Assembly: GCA_943704425.1 (NCBI GenBank) | Contig: CALSCP010002154.1 | Location: 32,127-96,126 of the forward strand | Length of the DNA stretch: 64,000 nucleotides | Source: Ministeria vibrans ATCC 50519 | Taxonomy: Eukaryota > Protista > Filasterea | Direction of reading: 5' to 3' | In this document: positions 10,977 through 57,859 of the stretch, piece after piece | Layout: each line of letters opens with the position of its first letter | Position numbering within the stretch: the first letter of the stretch is position 1 | Made by a program: the position numbers and the translations under genes | Notes under the pieces: generated by a model | Seen by the model: the letters and a program-made list of their open reading frames with translations, nothing else | Databases searched by the model: none | Told to the model about the DNA's origin: nothing

Positions 10977-13900
10977 TTAAATGTCACCGAGATTCTCATG
11001 AAAGTTGTTCCCCTCGGTGGTCATCTTGACAATGCCAACGCGAATGACAAAGTCACCAAAATGCTCGCCAGCAGTGCGCTCCGTTGCATACCGGCGCACA
11101 ATGGGTGCGAGCAGGGTCAGAATCTGCTCCTCGTTCACCGAGTCCTTGTACAGTTTGCTAAGGCGCTCGCCGCAGTGCCCGCCCCCCAAGTACATGTTGT
11201 AGATGCCCGGCGCACGCCCGACAAAGGCAATCTCAGCGACGTAGGGACGCGCACAGCCGTTGGGACAGCCCGTCATGCGAATAGTGATGGCGTCGTGACG
11301 CAGGCCCGCCTCGTCTATCAGCGCCTCAATACGTCCCACCAGTGATGGCAAGTAGCGCTCGCTCTCGGCCAGCGCCAAACCGCACGTTGGCAGCGCCACA
11401 CACGCCATCGAGTTGAGTCGCAGTCCCGTGTGCTGTGCGTGGTCCAGGAAGGGATATGTCTTGAGTGTCGCTTCAAGTGCCGCCCGTCCCTTCTCGCGCA
11501 TCCCCCCAATGATCAAGTGCTGGTTGGCCGTCAGACGGAAGTCCCCGTGGTCCGGCATCAGCTCCGTCGCCAGCTCACGCAGCGCCGTCTTGATCGGCAT
11601 ACCGGGCGTGTCGCCAATGCGCCCATTCTCAATGTACATGCCGTACGTCCAGGTGCCGTCGTGGCCTTCGTGCCAGCCAAAGCGGTCGCCGTTGCTCTTG
11701 AACGTGTACTCGCGCGACGCTTCCAACGCATAGCCCAGACGTTGCTCGACCTGCAAACGGAACCAGGCAACGCCGTGGTCCTCGAGCGTGTACTTGAGAC
11801 GCGCGTGCTTGCGATTCTGTCGGTCCCCGTGGTCCCGCTGCACCAGCATAACACTCTCGCCCACGTCAAGCACCTGCTCGGGCAGGCAGAAGCCCAGCGG
11901 CTTCGCAACGCACGGATACGTCTTCTTGTTATTATGCGTCATGCCCATGCCACCCCCAATCGTCACGTTGAAGCCTTGAAGTTCGCCCGATGCCTCGTCA
12001 ATGATCGCAATGAAGCCCAGACAATGGGCAAACACATCCGTGTCGTTGTGTGGCGGAATAGCAAACGCAATCTTGAACTTGCGCGGCAGGTACGTCGCCC
12101 CGTACAGCGGTTCAACCTCATCACCCCCCTTGGCCGCGCTCGCTGCTCCGTCCAACTGCACTGCATTTCCCGCAACCTGCAAGGTGAGAAAAAAGAAAGT
12201 TTTAATAACGTCATTATGATTGTAGTATTAATAATAATAAAATATAATAATTATTATTAATAATTATTATTATTAATTATTTTTTGTTGTTGTTTTGTTG
12301 TTATCACCTGTTTCTTTTTGCCCACTTCGTCGAGCAACCAAATCTCGTGGTAGGCAGACGTCTGCGGAGACAGGTGGGTACTGAGAGCACGTACAATGCG
12401 GTCGACCTCGGCGTGAGCGCGCGTGTCGTTAGGCGCGGGAGTGCACATGACGTTGCGGTTGACATCACCACAGGCCGCCAGCGTGTCCATTAGGGCCCGA
12501 TTGATCTCCTGAATCGACGAGCGAAGGTTCTTCTTGATGATCCCGTGCAGCTGGAAGGCCTGGCGCGTCGTCAGTTTGACGGTGCCCGAGCCGTGCGACT
12601 CGGCGAGAGCGTCCATTGCCAGGTATTGCGCGGCCGTCGAGATGCCGCCGGGCACACGAACGCGCACCATAAAGGAGAAGGCCTTCTCAAGACCGTCGCG
12701 ACGTCGTTGCTCGCGCAGGTCACGATCGTCTTGTTGGTAGATGCCATGGAACTTGGTCAGCTTGGTGTCGCGCTCGGGCAACGCACCCGTCGTCGTGTCC
12801 TGCAGTCCCTCAACAATAGTGCCACGCAAGTAGTTGCTGCCACGCTTGATGTCATCGTCGGCAATCTTGACAACAGCCGAGTTGCTGCCGTCCGCATCCG
12901 CCGCTGTCGCCACTCCAAGTGCCGCCCACAACGACGGTACCCAGGCAGCGTAGCCTGTCTCGAATCCGTCCGCGTCCTGGTCGTCACCATAGCCGATGTC
13001 GCAGAGGGGTGTCGAGCCCAGCAGCGTGAGACGCCGGTCCATGTCGACGCCCGCCTTGCAGTAGTACGCGGCATCTTCGGGTCGGGGCCAGTAGTGCGAG
13101 TCACCCATGGCAAATACGGCTGACTTGAGCGACGTGAGGTCGAGTGCCGTCGAGCTGAGCGCCTTCCAAAAGGCACGCCCGTTCGATGGGAACTCTCCCT
13201 GTCCAGCGGTCGAGACGACCACGACGAGCTGTCCCTCCCCCGGCAAATTGCTCAGCGCCGGATCTTCGCTGCAGTAGTCGTCCATGACAAGCAGTTGTGT
13301 TGGAACGCCGCGCTTAGTGCCTTCCGAGGCGATGCGTGCAGCAATCTTCTCGGCGTTGCCACCGTCCGACGAGTACAAAATGAGCGTGGGATCCGCCTTG
13401 AGACCCGACACAAGTCGCGCAAAGCTGTCCTGCAGCAGACTCGCATGATGAGCGTAACCTCGCACCAGCTCGCTACCGCCCGTCTGTGCCAGTGCCCCAT
13501 CGAGTTGCGGCTCGACGTGCGCCACGTGCGCCAAATGTTGGTCTCGCTGCAAAAACTGCTCAATGTCAGCACGTGTCTTGGCCGAGTCAAGCTGGAAGGG
13601 CTCGCCATTGCGAAGAGGATTCCAGCGGTAGAGAGGCCAGACGCCCGCATCCACCGCACGTTTTGTGGCCTGCAGCGTTGCCAAGTGACTGGCACGCGAC
13701 GCCAACGCAACTCCTTGGTCAGTGCGCACAATGGGTGCGTAAGCCAGGATCACGGCGGGTCCGTCAAACGCCTCGGCCTGCTGCACCGCTTCGAGTGCCT
13801 GAGTGTACGACCAGTGCACCGCAATGGACGCCACGTAGACGCTGCCGTAGTTCATAGCATACAGACCAATGTTCTTGCGCAACTGTCGATGTGCCCAAAG

Positions 13901-15287
13901 ACCGTCGTCGCTGTCGCTCAGCAAATCGTCGGTCGTCACCACCAACAGACGCACACGTTCGCCCGATGCCACAAGACTGTGCACACCCGACAGAGCCAGG
14001 TCGTCACCAAGACGGTCGCCGGCAAGGATCCACTTGGAGCGACGTTGCAACAAGTGCACATGATCACTTAACTCACTCACCGACTCACTCTTGACCAATC
14101 GTGTGATGGTCTCTGCGACCTCATTGCACGCGTCACTCGTGTTTGTCGCAAGCCACTGTGATAGTGCCGCGCGTAGTTCCTTGGACACCTTGCCACTACA
14201 GAGGTTGTTGAAAAAAGGAAAAAAAAAAAAACAAAAAACAAATCAGCTCCCCAAATCACATCATTCACACGTTTGCAGTCGGTCAGTTTTAAAAGTTGCG
14301 CTCTTACCTGGAGATGACAGAAGTGACACGCTGCTCAAGCTGCAGTCGCAGTGTATCGTGCGCGGCAAATTGGCCAAGGGCATTTTCGCCACTGAGGGAT
14401 GTTGCGGCGGACGCTTCGAGGTCGATGAGAGTGAGTGACTCGCGTGCAATCACTTGTTCCAGCAAGCGCAGGTAAGGCGCATAGCTCGGGTTTGCAGGAG
14501 TCCCGGTGGTGACGGAAGAGGCCACCACTGCATCCACTGTCACTGGCTGACAGATATTGAGCTGAGTCGCGTCAGGATCGTTGGCACTGGCAACAAGACG
14601 CGCTAAGTCGGCGGGAGCAACCGACGCACGACGACCATCCTGACCCACAATGGCGGCAAGGATGCGCGTGGAGGCGTCAACGCCGTCGCTGGAGGCAACA
14701 CTTGTAAAGAGCGGACCCCAAGCGACAGTGTCAAGCACGACAATGGCCTCGATGGAGGTGGACGAGGGAAGGGACGCAAGGAATCGCTGGGAATCCCACG
14801 GACGCACAAGTCGCACATGGACGAGGTGAAATTCGGGCGCAGTGGACTCCTTGGAAGCGTTGTAAAGAGCCGCAGCGCTTTCCAGCTCAACAGCTACCGC
14901 GCCAGTGGCAACCAGTACGATCACAGGCGAGGAAGCCGCAGCGGAGGCGGATGACGAGTCAAACGGACTGTACGACGAGTAGAGGTCGTGCCAGATGGCA
15001 TCAGCAGTGACAGCGGGTGCGTGTGCAGCGGCAGCGGTAGTGGCATCGTCGTCTGTGTCAATGAGCGAAAGATACAACGACGTGGGGGTGGCGGAGGCGG
15101 CTGCTGAAGACGACTCGCTGTCTTGGTGTTTGTCAGACAACTGCTTCAGGTGGTGCTGGAGTGAGGCCATGGCGACGACGGCGCTTGTGGACGCAGTCAA
15201 AGTGGATACACGAGGGTAAAAATGGACTACGGGTGTTTGCGAGCGTACTGCCATAAGGTGCGCTGAAACGGCCATGGCGGTTGATTC
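10977..15287 (-). CDS. MET5: Sulfite reductase beta (siroheme hemoprotein, Met5/Ecm17-like: PFOR-like + flavodoxin + NIR/SIR domains); expected N-terminus absent
   Basis: ILYSSDGGNAEK flavodoxin, KFHGIYQQDDRD, LTTRQAFQLHG, AACGDVNRN, YLPRKFKI, ACVALPTCGLA, TGCPNGC; acceptor at 15288 opens ESTAMAVSAHL..PVVHFY. Confidence 0.9.
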
Positions 15288-15693: not shown

Positions 15694-16130
15694 AGTAGGG
15701 GTCAGTTGAAGTTTGCTTGGTAAAGTTCACGTTTGATGAGAATTTGAATGATGAGACAATGATCACAATGTAAAGTGAGATCAGATCATTTTGATAAAAT
15801 TCCCTTAGCTTTAAGCCACAATGAATATGTATGATTGCGTCAGCCGTCACGGTCGGATTTTGTAATGATCACTGAGTCATCACTCCTGTGTCAGGTTGAC
15901 CGCAACGACGAGCGGCGTCTGCAGCGGGCTGCGGTCGGTGCACGCCGCAACTTCAGCCATTTGGATCTTGTCGAGAACGCCACACAAATCCTGCGTGAGC
16001 TCCTTGGCCGGCACACCCGCTGTGGTGCCCAAGCGCCCTGCACGAGCAAGCACACACACAAAAAAAGAACCAAGTGAGTTCTCACCCGAGTAGGGATAAA
16101 CTTGTTCGTATTTTCACGAAATGCACGAAG

Positions 16131-16187
16131 ATACGAAAATGAACGAAAATGAACGAAAATGAACGAAAATGAACGAAAATGAACGAA
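16131..16187. repeat. (GAACGAAAAT)n 10-bp tandem repeat, ~5 copies
   Basis: Directly visible. Confidence 0.85.
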
Positions 16188-16260
16188 CGATGAAAGGTTC
16201 TAATAATAATAAACAATAAAACTTAAAGACTATTCAAGATAATTATTAATAATATTGAGT

Positions 16261-19200
16261 TCAAATCACGGAGCCAAGGACTCCGCTTCCGCTGCGGTAG
16301 ATCAGAACATCGCCGTAATTTTCGGCGCCAGCCCAATCGTTCCAGACGCGTCCAATTAGAAGCGCCTGGTGGGAATGAGAAGAGTCGAGAGTGTGCAGAC
16401 GACGGCGGAGTTCTGCTGCGGAAATGACGGTCTCACCGTCACGAAAGGCAGACAGCTTGGGACCGAGTGCTTCCCAGAGAAGCTCAGTCATTCGTGTTTG
16501 ACTGTCGTCATCAGTCATGAAGGCGCTAGCATCGTCCAGCGAGCTGGAGATCATCTGGCGCGCGTAGCCAACGACCGGAGGATGAACCTGCTGCGTAATG
16601 TCGTTCTTGACCAGCGCGCCTGAGTTGCAGAAATCACAGATAATCAGGATATTGCACCCACGCCAACCAATCTCGGCATCAAGCAAACTCTGGAGCGAAA
16701 GTAAATCAAAGCGAGATGTTTTCCCGCTCGGGTTCACGCGCGCATCGCTCAAGAGTAGCCCGCCGCATTTGTCCTCGACGCCGTGCCCAATCAGCTGAAC
16801 GATCAAAAGGGAGTCCTTGCCGACACCTTCGCCCATGTCCTTGGCGAGTCGCAGAGCAGCCGTGACAATCTCCCTCCGTGTCACAACGTCGTTGGCACGC
16901 GTGTCCACCACGGTGTGAACCTTGAAACCGCGTCCGCCCCACAACTGCGCCATCCTTGACACGCTCTTGCGCACACCGGGAAGGTCTGCGTAGAGGTGGA
17001 GTGCATCATTGTTAGTGCTTTGGTAGCGACTTACACCCACCACAAGTGCACCAGCATGCGTGTACACGCAAGGAATGGTGCGCCCTACCAAAGAAAACAA
17101 TAATATTTATTATGTAGTTTCATTATAAAGTACTTTTCTTTTGCATACCAACGCTGGTTCGACCATGATCTACAATCCACCATTGCTCCAACGAGGCGTT
17201 AAAAAGTCGCTCGCCCTCGTGAGCGTAGGTGGCCAGGGCTGCAAAAACATTGCTCTCCAACAAGTAGCTCTGCGTTGACTTGGCCACTTTGTCGGGCGGA
17301 AAAAGAGGCGCATCTGCCTGAAACGGGTGTGCGGGTACAAATACGCAGTCGCCACGCCAACCCCATCGCAGAGACCGTGTCTGATTGCACACTTGCTCAC
17401 GAATTCGCTCTATCGTTCGCCACACATCATCGCTGTTCGTGTCGTCTGTCAGTTCAACACGCACAAACGGCTCGTTGTCAAACAGTCGAAGCTGAACAGG
17501 AACGCAATTCTTCATGATCATGACGCTTGTGCTTCGCTGCGTTGCCCGGATGAGGCAAGTGGGAAGAGACTCGCGCCAGAGTGCAACTACAATCAAGTGG
17601 AACGTGGCCAGTGACACAGGGAGCATCATGGAGCCTGTCGGCGTGTCCACATACTGATAGAGAAAAAGGTGGACCGGATGCACGTGGGAGACGGGCTGGT
17701 GCAAAAAAGGGGCATCGTCGGGGAGAAGCATGGGAATGAGGAGACGGTCATCACGACGAAACACCAAAGAGAGGCGTTCGAGTGAGGCCAGAAAGGCGGG
17801 CACGTCGGAGATGTCAGCACCTGCCAGCAACTGGCTGCGGTCGGGCTGTGGGGCCGACTGCGCGCGCGACTTTTGTCGACGCAATCGAGGCTTGAGGCGC
17901 TCTTTGAGGGCGATTCGGCCAGGCTTCTCCATCGCATCGGGCGCACGATGCGTCATCAATTCGTTTGCACGCTTGCTCGCTGCCGTCCACACAAGCCACT
18001 CAGCTACTTCGAACGGAAAGCCAACTTCCGACATCTCTTTCGCGGCGTCCAGCTCGCGCAGAATGCGTGAAGTGCGCCTGATGTCGAGTGCCTCTCCCGC
18101 AGAAATGACTTCATCAAGCATTGCCAGAGCACGCTTGCTCTTGGAGCGTCCCCACTGAGCCATCACAACGGAGCATAGCAGCTCAACAGCGGCCAACAGT
18201 TGAGGCACGTCAAAGATGATGACATCATCGTCGCTCACCGACACAGACGTGACGTCTGCTCGACAGACAAGGATGTCGGCCGAACTCTCCAAGTACGGGA
18301 TGAGACCATCGCGTATGGCATCATCTGACGGAAGCAGCTCGCCGAGCACAATCAGTGGTGCATCGTTGAGGGCAAGTTCGCCAAGGTTGCAGACGGGGCT
18401 CATGAGGGGAATCTTGCCGAAGCGCGTCCAGCGACCAATGAGGTCCTGTACGAACACCAGCTCTGTTGGCAGCTGGCGGTCACGTACGGCCGAGTGAAGA
18501 GCACTACTCAAGTCACGTAGGCCAATCTTTTTGGCGCTGCCGACTTGGAAAAAGCAAACGCTCTCTGTGCCCGACGGCTTCTCGACGTGGTCGCCGAGAA
18601 TAGCACCGATGCGTCGCAAAATCTCGCGGTGCGTCAGCAAGAGAAGGTCTGCTGGCACAGTGTTGTTAGGGAACGTGTCGACGTGAGTGCCGACAAGGAC
18701 AACGCGAAAATACGACATGTCAGTCGTAGGGACTTGGTGGGCGATGATGTGCGCCCACTTGGACATGTGGTCGAACTGTTGCTGAGCAGACACGGCGTTT
18801 TTCATCTCGGATAGGTCAAAGACGATAAGATACACAGATTCGGAGCCCATGAACAAGGCTGGAAGCGAGTCAAACATCGATTCCCCTGTGCGCGCGTGTG
18901 GTTGAGACGGAAGATAAAAAAAGACAGGGACAAAAAAGAGATAGTACAATTAAATCCAATACGAGATGTGTGCACACAGGTCATAAACAAGCCATCTATA
19001 TAAATTATAATGCATACCGGCAAAGTCGAATGTGTCCAAGTCAACGTGCTTTTCTTGCAGCTTACTCTCAAGGAGCCCTCGCGCTTGGTCCATTGTCTCG
19101 GTGAAGACGTGTGAAGGGCCGATAGGTGGCATTGAGCCGCTGCTGGATTGTTGGGAAGTCGCGCGCGAAAGGGAGCGATGGCCATAGGCAGTTGATGAAG

Positions 19201-20795
19201 GGGAGGACGTTGAGCGTGTGAGAGACTTTTGACGAGAGAGGTCACAGCTACTGACGACAATGGCAGGCGATACGCGTCGGGATAGCGGCCGCGAAACGCT
19301 TTCATCACAGCTGCTGCGACGGGTAGAGACGAGTTCGACGTCATCGTCGTTCCACACGGAATCCTCTTCAATCTCAGTCTGCTTCTCGTCCCATGTATCG
19401 CGCCGCGCCAGAGGCTGCCCCAGCCCACTGCTCTCACTAAATCTACGCTTTTCTGCGGAGATTTCCGCAGCAATGAGACTCGCCAGATGAGACTCTTCTT
19501 GAGGAACTGCCTGAAAGTACCCTGTGTCGGGGTTGAAGACCATTCGCAGACGGTGTATACGCGTCGCCACAGAGCGGTCGTCCTCGCCGGGCAAGGCCTC
19601 ACCCATCATTGCCGCCACGAGCGCACTTTTTCCTGCCATTGGCGCGCCAAGGAAAAGCAGCTTGATCGATTTGGAGACGACTGAACCACGAGACAGGGCC
19701 GCCGTGAACGCCAGATGGTATGCAAGCGCCCTGTTTTCGTGAGGGGAAAAAATAACAAAAAAGAAGAGGAGGAAAATAAGAAGAAAGTTATGTAGTGTTC
19801 CGTCACTGTCCATGTACAAGCTGTAGTTCATGTAGAATGTGTATCCTTACGGAATATTGGTCCATGTGAAGGAAGAGCCGTTTTCGCAGTGCGCAATGAG
19901 CGCTTTCGTGGTCTTCTTAAACTCCAATTTGGTCACGACACTAAGTACGTGTTCAAGTTAAAAAAAAAGGAATTAATAAGAAAGAGCAATAGACGTAAGT
20001 AGAATGCAAAAGAGTAAGTAATGATAATTACTCTGTAAGAGGAGAGTCATGGCATACCTGGCGCAATCGGTGAGGGTCGTGATTTGCGATCCATGTACAA
20101 GGGTCCACACTTTGATTGTGTGATCATACGAGCAAGAGAAAAAGGTGACACCATCTCCCATAATGCAGACTCGACGAGCAGCGCTGCAGTGATAAAGCAA
20201 AACAGTAATAATTATTTAGAATTAAATATTGTATGTTATGTGGAATATTGGGTCATACTCGGTGTGCGCGGCAAAAGAGCGAAGGCATGCGCCAGTTTGA
20301 ATGTCCCACACTTTGACTGTCTCGTCAAGTGACCCGCTGACCACGCCTGCCTCTTCTGTTGGCGTAAACACTGCACATCGCACTCCTCTACGTATGCGCA
20401 GTCAAAAGTCAATAAGTGTCTCATATGTATCTATGTGTGTGCGCATGTGTGTACATATGCGTATTAATTATTGTGAGTGATATTAATACTCGCGTAATTA
20501 ATAATTATTATTATTATTATAATTATTATATTTTGGGTGTACGCGTGAGTGTGTAAACATCATGCCGTGCGTTTTTGTGTGCAAAAGAGAGACAGTGTAT
20601 ACATGTAAAAGAATTAATTATCACTAGTAATTCTTCGTTACTTTGTATGACCGACGAAAGACTTTGTGCACTCGCCAGACTCGACAGACCACAGCTTCAC
20701 TGTCATGTCGTCTGATGCACTCAATATGTTCAGTCCATTGTGATCAAATACGCACGACCAGATCCACCTAACACAAGCAAGAAAACGGTTATATG

Positions 20796-20838
<43 letters not shown>

Positions 20839-21726
20839 GTTATTATTATTATTATTATTATTATAATTATTTTAGCAGTACGAGTTGTGGCCGCTCAATG
20901 TCATCACGCACACGCCCAAATCAATGTCCCACAGTTTCATAGTGCAGTCATTCGAGGCGCTGAGCACTTTTGTCTGGTCTGGAGAGAGTGCCACGTCCCA
21001 AATCTCACTGTCGCAAAAAAGAATGCAATGGGATGTATGGCAAAACAAACAAATTGCGACTCTTTTGTGTACCCTTCATGGCCTTCGAATGATGACAGAC
21101 ATTCGCCCGTGCGGAGGTCCCATATTTTCACAGTCTTGTCGTACGAGCCGCTTGCAGCCCGAGTGCCATCGGGAAAGAGAACGCCGCAACCAACGCTTCT
21201 AGGGGAAGAATAGCAGTCAACGAGACACCGTTCACCGAACGTACGCGTTCACCCAACTCTCGCGGCGTAACGTACTGGCTGTGGCCATGAAGCGTCACGC
21301 AGCAAGCGCCACTCTCAAAGTCCCACACTTTCAAAGTTTCATCTCGAGAAGCACTCAATATGGTGTTGCCCGTGGTAGAGATGTCGACGGAGAAGATAGG
21401 CCTACGGAAAAAGAAAAAAAAGCAAAGCGGAAGTGGGTGGGTGAAAGCTTTATTGTCCACGTAAAAACATACCCGTGGTGTCCTGTGAGCGACCGAACAC
21501 ACTGAAAGTCCTTTACAGACCAGATCTTTACTTCTCTGTTGGCGCCGCCGCTGACTAGCCACTCTTCATCGGCGCTGAGCGCGACGTCGAATATCGCAGC
21601 TGAGTCGTGCAAAACCTCAAGCGGACAGCCGATCTCGCTACTGCCACCACTTTCTGGGCTAAACAAGACAACATCTGACTTGTTACTGTAAGCTAAAACG
21701 TCTTCGTCAATGCGAACAAACGGCAT
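16261..21726 (-). CDS. WD40-Roc-COR-caspase/metacaspase-like (C14) multidomain protein, ~1458 aa, 11 exons
   Basis: Exons 21473-21726, 21276-21401, 21073-21198, 20882-21007, 20642-20767, 20259-20387, 20058-20183, 19851-19940, 19018-19730, 17149-18885, 16261-17084 join in frame (4377 nt). WD40 GH..WD repeats; Roc GAPMAGKS, DFAG, VYLIVFDL, VGTHVD; protease ALVVGVSRY, LIGHG, ICDFCNSG. Confidence 0.85.
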
Positions 21727-22104
21727 TTGAAAAAAAAAATAAAACATTTAGACAACAAATCTATAATCATAGTAAACAATTAATATGTGGCGTTACTTGC
21801 TTGTTTGGCCATCGGTCAAACCATCTGCTCTCTCAATACTTCTTAAACTTGTATCTGAGTAATTTCCCGTGCCTCAAAAATGAATCTGAGCTCTTTGTGT
21901 TGTGCTTTTTTTGCATTGCAGTTGAAAATGTAAAAATTTAACAATTTGCCTAAACACTGCACAAAAACAAAATCACGGCACGAATGGCAGGAGCTGTGAT
22001 CCGGCTCAGAACATACACGCATATCACTACGTCTTTGCATACATGACGCTTCTAACCTCCTCGCTCACTTGCATGACAGACACAGAAAACAAAAACGCTA
22101 CAAT

Positions 22105-50736: not shown

Positions 50737-56574
<5,838 letters not shown>

Positions 56575-56804
56575 AAAGCTATGAGTAAAATTACAGAAAT
56601 GAAAATATGATTAGGAGGGTCTGTGAAAGTAGTTTGACAGTTGTGGTTTTGGAACGGATTTTTTTTGGTTGAACTTTGAACTTCTTTGATTTTTCAAATT
56701 TCACTCTTTTCGTTATTTTGTCGACATTCCTGTAGTCCACGTGATATACTTTCCTGAAACTTCGTTCCTTCTCTCTCTCTCCCTCTCTCTCTCTCTCAAT
56801 TTCC

Positions 56805-57560
56805 ATGTCGAATTCTGGTACATGACACACATGATGTCCATTATCTCTCATCCTCTCGATAGGTCCAAGCGCTCCACCTCCGGAGGATATGCCCCCGCCA
56901 TATGCTCAATCCGCTGCGTACCCACCTGTAGACAAGACTTATGCGTAAGACTGTTCGCACTTTTTTATGGCAATGAGAGGGGGAAAGTTCCCCCCAAAAA
57001 TATCTCTGACAAAAATTCTCGGTGTACTGTAGCGGCTACCCGCCAGCCTCTAGTCATCCGCCAGGTGCAGGTAGGCTGTTGCAAGGTGTCCTGTGAACCG
57101 TGCATAATGCTCTCTTTTCGTCCAGGCTATCCTCCGCAGCAGGGAGGCTATCCTCCGCCGCATCAGCAGGGGGGCTATCCTCCTCCTGGAGCCTATCCGC
57201 CTGCTCCCCAGCCGGGCTACCCGCCTCAACAGCAAGGCTATCCACCTAAACAGCAAGGCTATCCGCCGCAGGGGCTGCACCCTCAATTTAGTACGCGATA
57301 CAAGGTGTAGTGTTGCGCTTACAACGTGTGCTGTAGGTAACGTTCCTGCGCAGCACAGCGCTGTGATGCAGCCCGCAGGTGGGTACCCACCACCGCCTGT
57401 TCAGTACTACCAACCAGGACCACAGAGGACGGTGGTTATCACGCAAGGTCGAACGCAGGCACAGATTGATCAAGAGCGTCGCGCTCGCGAACAGGAACAG
57501 GAGTGCTGTGCCCTTGCCGTGTGTCTTTCTGCCTTGTGTTTCTGCTGCTGCGTCACTTGA
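56805..57560 (+). CDS. CYSTM-type proline/glutamine-rich tail-anchored protein, 5 exons
   Basis: PPPY motif, GYPPQ repeats, C-terminal CCALAVCLSALCFCCCVT; splice phases consistent. Confidence 0.75.
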
Positions 57561-57859
57561 TCAGTTGCAACCCATGAGGTCTTTTGGCCCCGTTCTAGGC
57601 CCAGCTCTTCGCCTTTTATCTCCTTGTATCAAAAAGACACTTTCCGATCTTGCAACTGAGTAACGCACAGAAACTCAAAGAATTCACACACAAAAGTAAA
57701 AAAGACAGGCGTCAGCTCAAATAGAGATGGGCCGATGGATGACGTAATGACTATGAACGGCACGAATAGAACCGTATTCATTCAAATATTCATTTTTGGT
57801 TTGCTATAATAATTTTTACTTTTTACTTTTCAGACGCATTATTATTATTGTCATTGGTC

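Follow-up and report, generated by a model that had tools for sequence, protein, structure and literature searches.

The window analysed here is a stretch of 64,000 nucleotides from the genome of the filasterean Ministeria vibrans ATCC 50519 (GenBank assembly GCA_943704425.1, contig CALSCP010002154.1, positions 32,127 to 96,126 of the forward strand); positions below are those of the window unless a contig or locus is named. Its minus strand, to which all features of the gene described here belong, carries one real, expressed gene (16188..21736) that encodes in a single polypeptide a run of WD40 repeats, a Roc-COR module and a caspase-like protease of the Peptidase_C14 family (hereafter C14).

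Contigs of four public runs were aligned to window positions 16100-21900. Three of the runs (X1, X2 and X3) come from one study, are transcript-like and are presumed to be RNA; the fourth (X5) is a DNA run. Each of the former yielded one spliced contig over 16188-21736 (4460 nt in X1, 4435 nt in X2, longer in X3). Nine introns are skipped in these contigs, each with CT..AC ends on the plus strand, i.e., GT..AG on the minus strand, and among those removed are the 64-nt intron between COR-B and the protease exon (17085-17148) and a 132-nt intron within the codons of the DFAG motif (18886-19017). The DNA run retained intron sequence and contained none of the splice joints of the gene. A tenth intron (20768-20881), which falls within an (AAT)n repeat not covered by the read alignment, was placed by its GT..AG ends; with it included, the rebuilt mRNA and the X1 contig agree exactly in length (4460 nt).

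The transcribed unit comprises eleven exons and ten introns, as established from the spliced contigs and the rebuilt mRNA. The latter has a single open reading frame of 1458 amino acids (coding sequence 16261..21726), with the ATG at 21726 and the stop codon at 16261-16263, flanked by untranslated regions (UTRs) of at least 10 nt at the 5' end and about 50-73 nt at the 3' end. In the protein, the motifs GAPMAGKS, DFAG, GTHVD, IGHG and DFCNSG start at residues 396, 603, 671, 1283 and 1335, respectively. The eleven in-frame exons proposed in the initial annotation, together with the introns 17085-17148 and 18886-19017, are therefore borne out by the contigs of X1-X3. The transcript joint 17149->17084 is present in all three, and the protease is not a separate gene. 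Furthermore, a processed DNA copy is excluded, since exon 10 matches no other place of the 29.7-Mb genome assembly at 100% and an intronless copy is thus lacking. Nor is the gene structure due to chance, because the reading frame belongs to an expressed, spliced transcript and 17 of the 20 paralogous loci examined repeat the exon order.

Some irregularities of the locus were recorded. Microsatellites of the (AAT)n or AT-rich type fill two introns, at 20768-20881 and 20470-20560, and the X5 contigs break at both. A 10-nt tandem repeat (cattttcgtt-like units) lies directly past the 3' end of the gene, at 16120-16200; the X3 contig is shorter by 20 nt there, which reflects copy-number variation between samples. 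The same contig (9221 nt) continues for 4737 nt past position 16100, presumably into the transcript of the adjacent gene, and this extension may reflect overlapping or adjacent UTRs.

Domain organisation of the encoded protein

The N-terminal region is built from WD40 repeats, one per exon. The coding part of exon 1 (21473..21726, residues 1-85), ending at the joint 21472/21401, contains an N-terminal lead and repeat 1 (Pfam WD40, 35.4 bits). Exons 2-7 (20058..21401), delimited by the spliced contigs, carry one repeat each and lie at 21401-21276, 21198-21073, 21007-20882, 20767-20642, 20387-20259 and 20183-20058. They are phase 2 cassettes of 126 nt, except for one of 129 nt, and with exon 1 they make up seven WD40 repeats; phase 2 holds at the ends of exons 1-8. 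Pfam WD40 or β-propeller models matched every WD40 exon scanned, namely exon 1 and five of the six cassettes, and in exon 20767-20642, which was outside the scan, the WD40 pattern is visible in the translation. The repeat consensus of exons 1-7 reads xVxSVxFSPDGxxLxSxSxDxTxKxWD...GxCxxTLxGH. Seven such repeats suggest a seven-bladed propeller, in line with the approximately seven N-terminal repeats counted in the initial annotation. Exon 8 (19851..19940, residues 338-368), also placed by the spliced contigs, probably connects the predicted propeller with Roc, either as a short linker or as a closing strand.

For the remainder of the protein, domain, fold and database searches were done exon by exon: 19019-19729 for the first half of Roc, 17150-18883 for its second half and COR, and 16264-17082 for C14. 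The N-terminal half of Roc is encoded by exon 9 (19018..19730, residues 368-606), as recognised from its motifs and from the alignment of paralogues. It contains the P-loop GAPMAGKS (19648-19625) and, further on, the switch-I motif DRSVATR, with the DFA of G3 at its end. A Ser/Arg-rich insertion of roughly 110 residues, not conserved among paralogues, separates switch I from G3. Exon 10 opens (18476..18885) with the remaining G of DFAG, followed by the second half of Roc, which includes the G4 motif GTHVD and matches the fold of LRRK2 Roc. The signatures GAxxAGK[ST], DRSxATR, DFAG and GTHxD are kept across paralogues.

The rest of exon 10 is predicted to encode COR in two halves. COR-A (17945..18469, residues about 745-919) is followed by a basic linker of low confidence (17849..17944, residues about 920-951; predicted local distance difference test score, pLDDT, below 50 at model residues 314-345), the length of which varies among paralogues, as seen from split matches in the genome search. 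COR-B (17165..17848, residues about 952-1179) comes next and is matched by the structure 3dpt_B; in known Roco proteins this is the dimerisation half of COR.

These assignments stem from structural modelling. A single-sequence AlphaFold prediction of exon 10 was uninformative (pLDDT 35); the prediction based on 22 aligned paralogous exons reached a pLDDT of 84.1 and a predicted template modelling score of 0.80. When this model was compared with the PDB by Foldseek, the 28 best-ranked matches listed were all Roco proteins, including Chlorobium tepidum Roco (CtRoco; E 3e-7), LRRK2, LRRK1 and Methanosarcina Roco2. In VIA-align, model residues 139-573 matched 3dpt_B, the COR of CtRoco, with Z 14.2 over 285 of 299 residues, and LRRK2 residues 1398-1860 were matched at Z 12. 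The Roc part of the model matched LRRK2 Roc (2zej_B) with Z 9.9 over 100 residues (root mean square deviation 2.5 Å, 21% identity). Therefore, the central module is by predicted fold a Roc-COR of the LRRK2 type.

Sequence models were much less responsive. Pfam Ras matched the Roc region at a sub-threshold E of 0.03, and Pfam Roc likewise gave sub-threshold matches only (E 0.049 in one paralogue). Neither Pfam COR-A nor COR-B gave a match in exon 10 or in the 22 aligned family members. The top PDB profile matches of the Roc region were LRRK2 Roc chains (E 0.1-1), and phmmer with exon 10 against PDB sequences returned chance fibronectin matches only. As the Pfam Roc and COR models miss their thresholds, the protein is assigned to the Roco proteins by its fold and motifs: a Ras-like Roc with G1, G3 and G4 motifs, and a COR region, recognised by its predicted fold, directly after Roc in the same polypeptide. 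The Roc GTPase and the presumptive COR region of the initial annotation have both gained in substance, the former by motifs in their expected places and the match to LRRK2 Roc, the latter by the fold match to 3dpt_B, though Pfam is silent on it. The NACHT or NB-ARC switch of proteins of the NLR (nucleotide-binding domain and leucine-rich repeat) and STAND (signal transduction ATPases with numerous domains) types is not what is found at this position, where the switch is Roc-COR by fold.

The coding part of exon 11 (16264..17084, residues 1185-1458) corresponds to Peptidase_C14 (Pfam PF00656, 26.8 bits against a cut-off of 21.4). The same model matched 14 of 16 paralogues, with a best E of 2.1e-10; weak CHAT matches were found in 7 of 16 family members, and the window protease scores better as Peptidase_C14 than as CHAT. 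The catalytic residues are His1285 (16785-16783, in IGHG) and Cys1337 (16629-16627, in DFCNSG), and the dyad is invariant, within the contexts GHG and DxCxSG, in all 16 aligned paralogues. No more than about ten residues separate the end of COR-B from the start of the domain, which is encoded by one contiguous exon of 273 amino acids, with no visible prodomain or long linker.

The family profile of C14 matched Arabidopsis metacaspase-4 at E 0.005, and the closest Atlas clusters to the C14 exon are bacterial Peptidase_C14. In the alignment with metacaspase-4, the Asp preceding the catalytic Cys is kept (DFC) and the 'ND' position of metacaspases reads 'KS'. We take the latter to be the site of one S1-pocket Asp, which appears as Ser in the window protein. 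Judged by its sequence, the domain does not seem to be a canonical metacaspase; the intact dyad and the C14 assignment of the initial annotation are borne out.

Paralogues and the sequence evolution of sensor, switch and protease

The gene is not a one-off, which the initial annotation had missed. Exon 10 matched 78 places of the assembly, corresponding to at least 40 loci with 48-65% protein identity, and a profile of the C14 exon matched 65 places, about 40 of which are near full length with open frames. The architecture was examined at 20 of the about 40 loci, 19 of which were also scanned upstream, where WD40 repeats were located by local tblastn with the first 368 residues. A C14 exon lies directly downstream of COR at 17 of the 20 loci, and runs of WD40 motifs were found upstream at 12 of the 19. 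The spacer between COR and C14 measures 69-90 nt and occupies the same place throughout, consistent with a conserved COR-C14 intron. Altogether, these matches point to about 40 genes of the WD40-Roc-COR-C14 family in the genome. The uninterrupted COR and C14 open frame at locus L010 merely results from an intron without a stop codon and was not used as evidence.

The environmental contig L029 is matched at 98% identity by two family members on separate contigs (C916:8838-11344 and C1344:11145-13660). As these two may represent either a very recent duplication or haplotypes that were not collapsed, the count of about 40 may be slightly inflated. Another contig, C1441, bears three members within 50 kb (53-55, 77-80 and 100-103 kb) in mixed orientation, which looks like local tandem or segmental duplication.

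The N-terminal part is not the same in all members. Over Roc-COR-C14, L010 and L009 share 84.5% DNA identity, but the N-terminal region of L010 is unlike that of L009 and lacks WD40 motifs. At L010, L017 and L019, long open frames (180-480 amino acids) occupy the place where WD40 exons would be; no Pfam match was obtained for these upstream frames, which may encode alternative sensor domains. Upstream of a WD40-less member there is also an open frame of 606 amino acids with a Peptidase_C14 match of E 3.4e-5 (L011:6735-8552, minus strand, equal to C1441 about 55934-57751); it would represent either an adjacent caspase gene or a second, N-terminal caspase domain.

Database searches suggest that the family is narrowly distributed. 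A HMMER search with exon 10 among 1.84 billion representative proteins returned five matches, four of which resemble copies or fragments of the WD40-Roc-COR-C14 family. The fifth, P0005, is a true Roc and COR-A protein by Pfam and was matched over its GTPase half only (E 4.9e-4); a search with P0005 for further Roco relatives found P0005 itself and a fragment. This weak GTPase match was the only sequence similarity to bacterial Roco proteins that could be detected. Word-indexed profile searches with two alignments of the family (A1, the one used for the structural model, and A2) matched metagenome and Logan contigs only, and the database relatives that were tested are 96-99% identical to paralogues of this genome. 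Neither the HMMER search with exon 10 nor the profile searches with A1 and A2 brought up relatives in other organisms, and as far as the databases reach the family appears confined to one species or close strains.

The course of sequence change within the gene was followed in two independent recent pairs, which were compared exon by exon, the ratio of non-synonymous to synonymous substitution rates (dN/dS) being obtained by a counting method. L009 and L018, which lie on separate contigs, are duplicates of gene size and share 93-96% DNA identity. Over the six WD40 cassette exons there are 32 non-synonymous and 9 synonymous differences (dN/dS 1.10), and the introns between these exons differ at no more than 1 of 259 positions; dN/dS is 0.29 in exon 10 and 0.28 in the C14 exon. 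The second pair consists of the genomic L028 and the environmental contig L029, with 97% DNA identity; here, dN/dS was 1.42 in the WD40 exons, with 34 replacements, as against 0.20 in exon 10 and 0.29 in the C14 exon. In both pairs the replacements are concentrated at positions 1, 3, 19 and 21 of the 41-residue WD40 unit, that is, at the start of the first strand and at the residues flanking the Asp of SxDxT. We take these positions to lie on the top, ligand-binding face of the propeller and to correspond to the diversifying sites of fungal HET-E/NWD genes. The pattern is one of a fast-changing, exchangeable sensor placed before a constrained switch and protease, with a rapidly evolving sensor surface of the sort known from immune receptors.

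Genes of a related kind occur elsewhere in the genome. NB-ARC was matched in at least 29 places, and Peptidase_C14 matches directly adjoin NB-ARC matches on the same strand at C1613:120996-123065 and C328:29623-31338, which suggests STAND-type caspase fusions in the same genome. Genes for light-harvesting proteins gave no match in the genome. The other genes of the window are ordinary eukaryotic ones and encode a flavodoxin-containing sulfite reductase and MIF4G/MA3, SNF2 and RING proteins. In the first of them (10980-14188, minus strand), the exons of the sulfite reductase hemoprotein and a flavodoxin domain share an open frame (Flavodoxin_1 and NIR_SIR), an arrangement that is presumably of the fungal Met5 type.

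Possible function and comparison with known systems

The reading that we favour, with a probability of roughly 0.6, is that the family consists of intracellular receptor-proteases comparable to NLRs and the apoptosome, in which a Roco GTPase, not a STAND ATPase, serves as the switch. An immune or cell-death function, as suggested in the initial annotation, is plausible. In such a mechanism, the variable top face of the WD40 propeller would bind a ligand of non-self or modified-self origin; binding would change the nucleotide state of Roc-COR and its COR-mediated oligomeric state; two or more C14 domains, seated on COR-B, would be brought together or released; and cleavage of substrates by the activated domains would then probably lead to cell death or a defence response. 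The ligand, the control by GTP, the dimerisation, the substrates and the outcome are all inferred from CtRoco, LRRK2, caspases and the bacterial Roc-COR-CHAT protein discussed below. The receptor role gains indirect support from the about 40 paralogues, the WD40 dN/dS of 1.1-1.4, the swapped N-terminus and the many NB-ARC genes.

Several points speak against this reading. The Pfam models of Roc and COR both remain below threshold. Metacaspases are usually activated as monomers, via Ca2+ and autoprocessing, and activation driven by dimers may therefore not apply. Gasdermin (PF04598) was not found in the genome at E <= 0.1 in an exon-by-exon search of a fragmented assembly, bacterial-type gasdermins being divergent; by this search, the protein that serves as the substrate in bacteria is missing. 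Only two pairs underlie the dN/dS values, which were obtained by a counting method and to which partial gene conversion among the WD40 repeats could contribute. Finally, because the window gene has no recent duplicate, the result on selection describes the family and not the window copy.

The best of the other explanations is that the same protein acts in ordinary signalling, as a GTPase-gated regulatory protease in development, stress or the cell cycle, and that the family expanded by sub-functionalisation. Metacaspases also have roles other than in cell death, and the transcript was present in all three transcript-like runs, which involved no known challenge. Additionally, Roco proteins of Dictyostelium and animals act mostly in signalling and trafficking (PMC11378527). 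A dN/dS above 1 confined to ligand-face positions would, however, be unexpected in housekeeping paralogues, and so would a swapped N-terminus and about 40 lineage-restricted copies; we regard this explanation as improbable.

A self/non-self system, serving allorecognition or incompatibility in the manner of fungal HET-E/NWD rather than defence against pathogens, is less probable still. In the fungal HET-E/NWD systems the WD40 repeats diversify and death is triggered on cell fusion. The hypervariable top-face positions and the large family presumably resemble that situation, and 34 replacements in the WD40 exons separate L028 from an environmental contig with 97% DNA identity. The switch, however, is Roc-COR and not NACHT, and the mechanism overlaps with that of a receptor-protease, differing in its trigger alone.

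A fusion artefact, be it read-through joining two genes, mis-assembly or a processed DNA copy, could draw on the presumed nature of the RNA runs, on the tendency of contigs to be chimeric and on the X3 contig that extends 4.7 kb beyond the 3' end, presumably into the adjacent gene, but it is very improbable given the canonical, in-frame GT..AG joint 17084/17149 in three samples and not in the DNA run, the lack of an intronless genome copy and the COR-then-C14 order with its 69-90-nt spacer in 17 of 20 paralogous loci.

How far proteins of this design are new can be judged from the systems described so far. The protease of a Runella gasdermin operon, labelled 'Roc-COR-CHAT' by Johnson et al. 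(bioRxiv 10.1101/2021.06.07.447441), cleaves a gasdermin in bacteria and thereby causes cell death. Common to it and the window protein is the fusion of Roc-COR to a C-terminal caspase-like cysteine protease in one polypeptide, whereas the window protein has N-terminal WD40 repeats, scores as C14 over CHAT, is encoded with eukaryotic introns and belongs to a family of about 40 genes. In the bacterial system, protease and gasdermin are encoded together; the PF04598 genome search, which is a weak test, detected no gasdermin here. Since the Runella protein has been described, a Roco module that drives a caspase-like protease is not new in principle.

A eukaryotic parallel is provided by the LRR-ROCOs of brown algae, which combine leucine-rich repeats (LRR) with ROCO. 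Ectocarpus has 31 such genes, proposed to encode pathogen receptors, with one LRR per 72-bp phase-2 exon, an organisation that permits exon shuffling (Zambounis et al. 2012, PMC3341825; PMC11378527). Expansion of a ROCO family and the placement of each sensor repeat on its own phase-2 exon are thus shared with the family described here, whereas the sensor is LRR on 72-bp exons in the algae and WD40 on 126-bp exons in the window family. Moreover, ROC-COR is not followed by an effector in most of the algal proteins. C-terminal peptidase domains do occur on ROCOs of a few brown-algal and other members of SAR (stramenopiles, alveolates and Rhizaria) (PMC11378527), but these belong to another clan, the algal peptidase being IPR009003 and not C14.

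With LRRK2, LRRK1 and CtRoco the window protein shares a Roc in which THxD replaces NKxD, followed by COR-A and COR-B, with fold matches of Z 10-14 over about 300-420 residues; in contrast to them, its Roc holds a large disordered insertion, and Pfam Roc and COR are not reached. LRRK2 also carries a WD40 domain, although at the C-terminus rather than the N-terminus, and its effector is a kinase rather than a protease. Metacaspase-NACHT-WD40 proteins are widespread in bacteria (PMC3501461). These and the other caspase-STAND-repeat proteins (bacterial and fungal metacaspase-NACHT/NB-ARC-WD40, Apaf-1) resemble the window protein in uniting a repeat sensor, a nucleotide switch and a protease of caspase fold. 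They differ in the switch, which is a Ras-like GTPase with COR in the window protein, and in the order of the parts, which is reversed there, with the sensor N-terminal and the protease C-terminal.

No eukaryotic WD40-Roc-COR-C14 protein, or other fusion of Roc-COR to a caspase or metacaspase, was found in the open literature, where some of the text matches were possibly chance overlaps of words. The initial impression of an undescribed architecture thus stands for the eukaryotic four-part arrangement, and it has to be narrowed in view of the bacterial Roc-COR-CHAT and the ROCO-peptidases of SAR, which had been described already.

Going beyond a receptor-protease in general, the family might constitute a large eukaryotic repertoire of intracellular non-self receptors on a Roco chassis, in which hypervariable WD40 sensors encoded as exon cassettes are coupled to a Roc-COR switch that activates its own protease and so kills or defends the cell. 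We put this forward tentatively, at somewhat less than even odds. If it were true, the 'apoptosome-in-one-chain' type of immune receptor would comprise a second class, independent of the first, and Roc-COR would gain a natural proteolytic read-out by which its debated nucleotide and dimer cycle would be easy to assay. Roco proteins matter largely through LRRK2, and the transfer of the signal from Roc-COR to the effector is still debated; a protease sitting on COR-B would offer a simple biochemical read-out of this coupling. The sensor-switch-executioner design would have been assembled again, with a different switch, and the theme known from bacterial Roc-COR-CHAT would be extended to a eukaryote. 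In doing so, Ministeria would have used devices in common with the brown-algal ROCOs, namely a separate exon for each repeat, rapid evolution of the binding face and an expanded family, which are likewise those of fungal NWD genes and NLRs.

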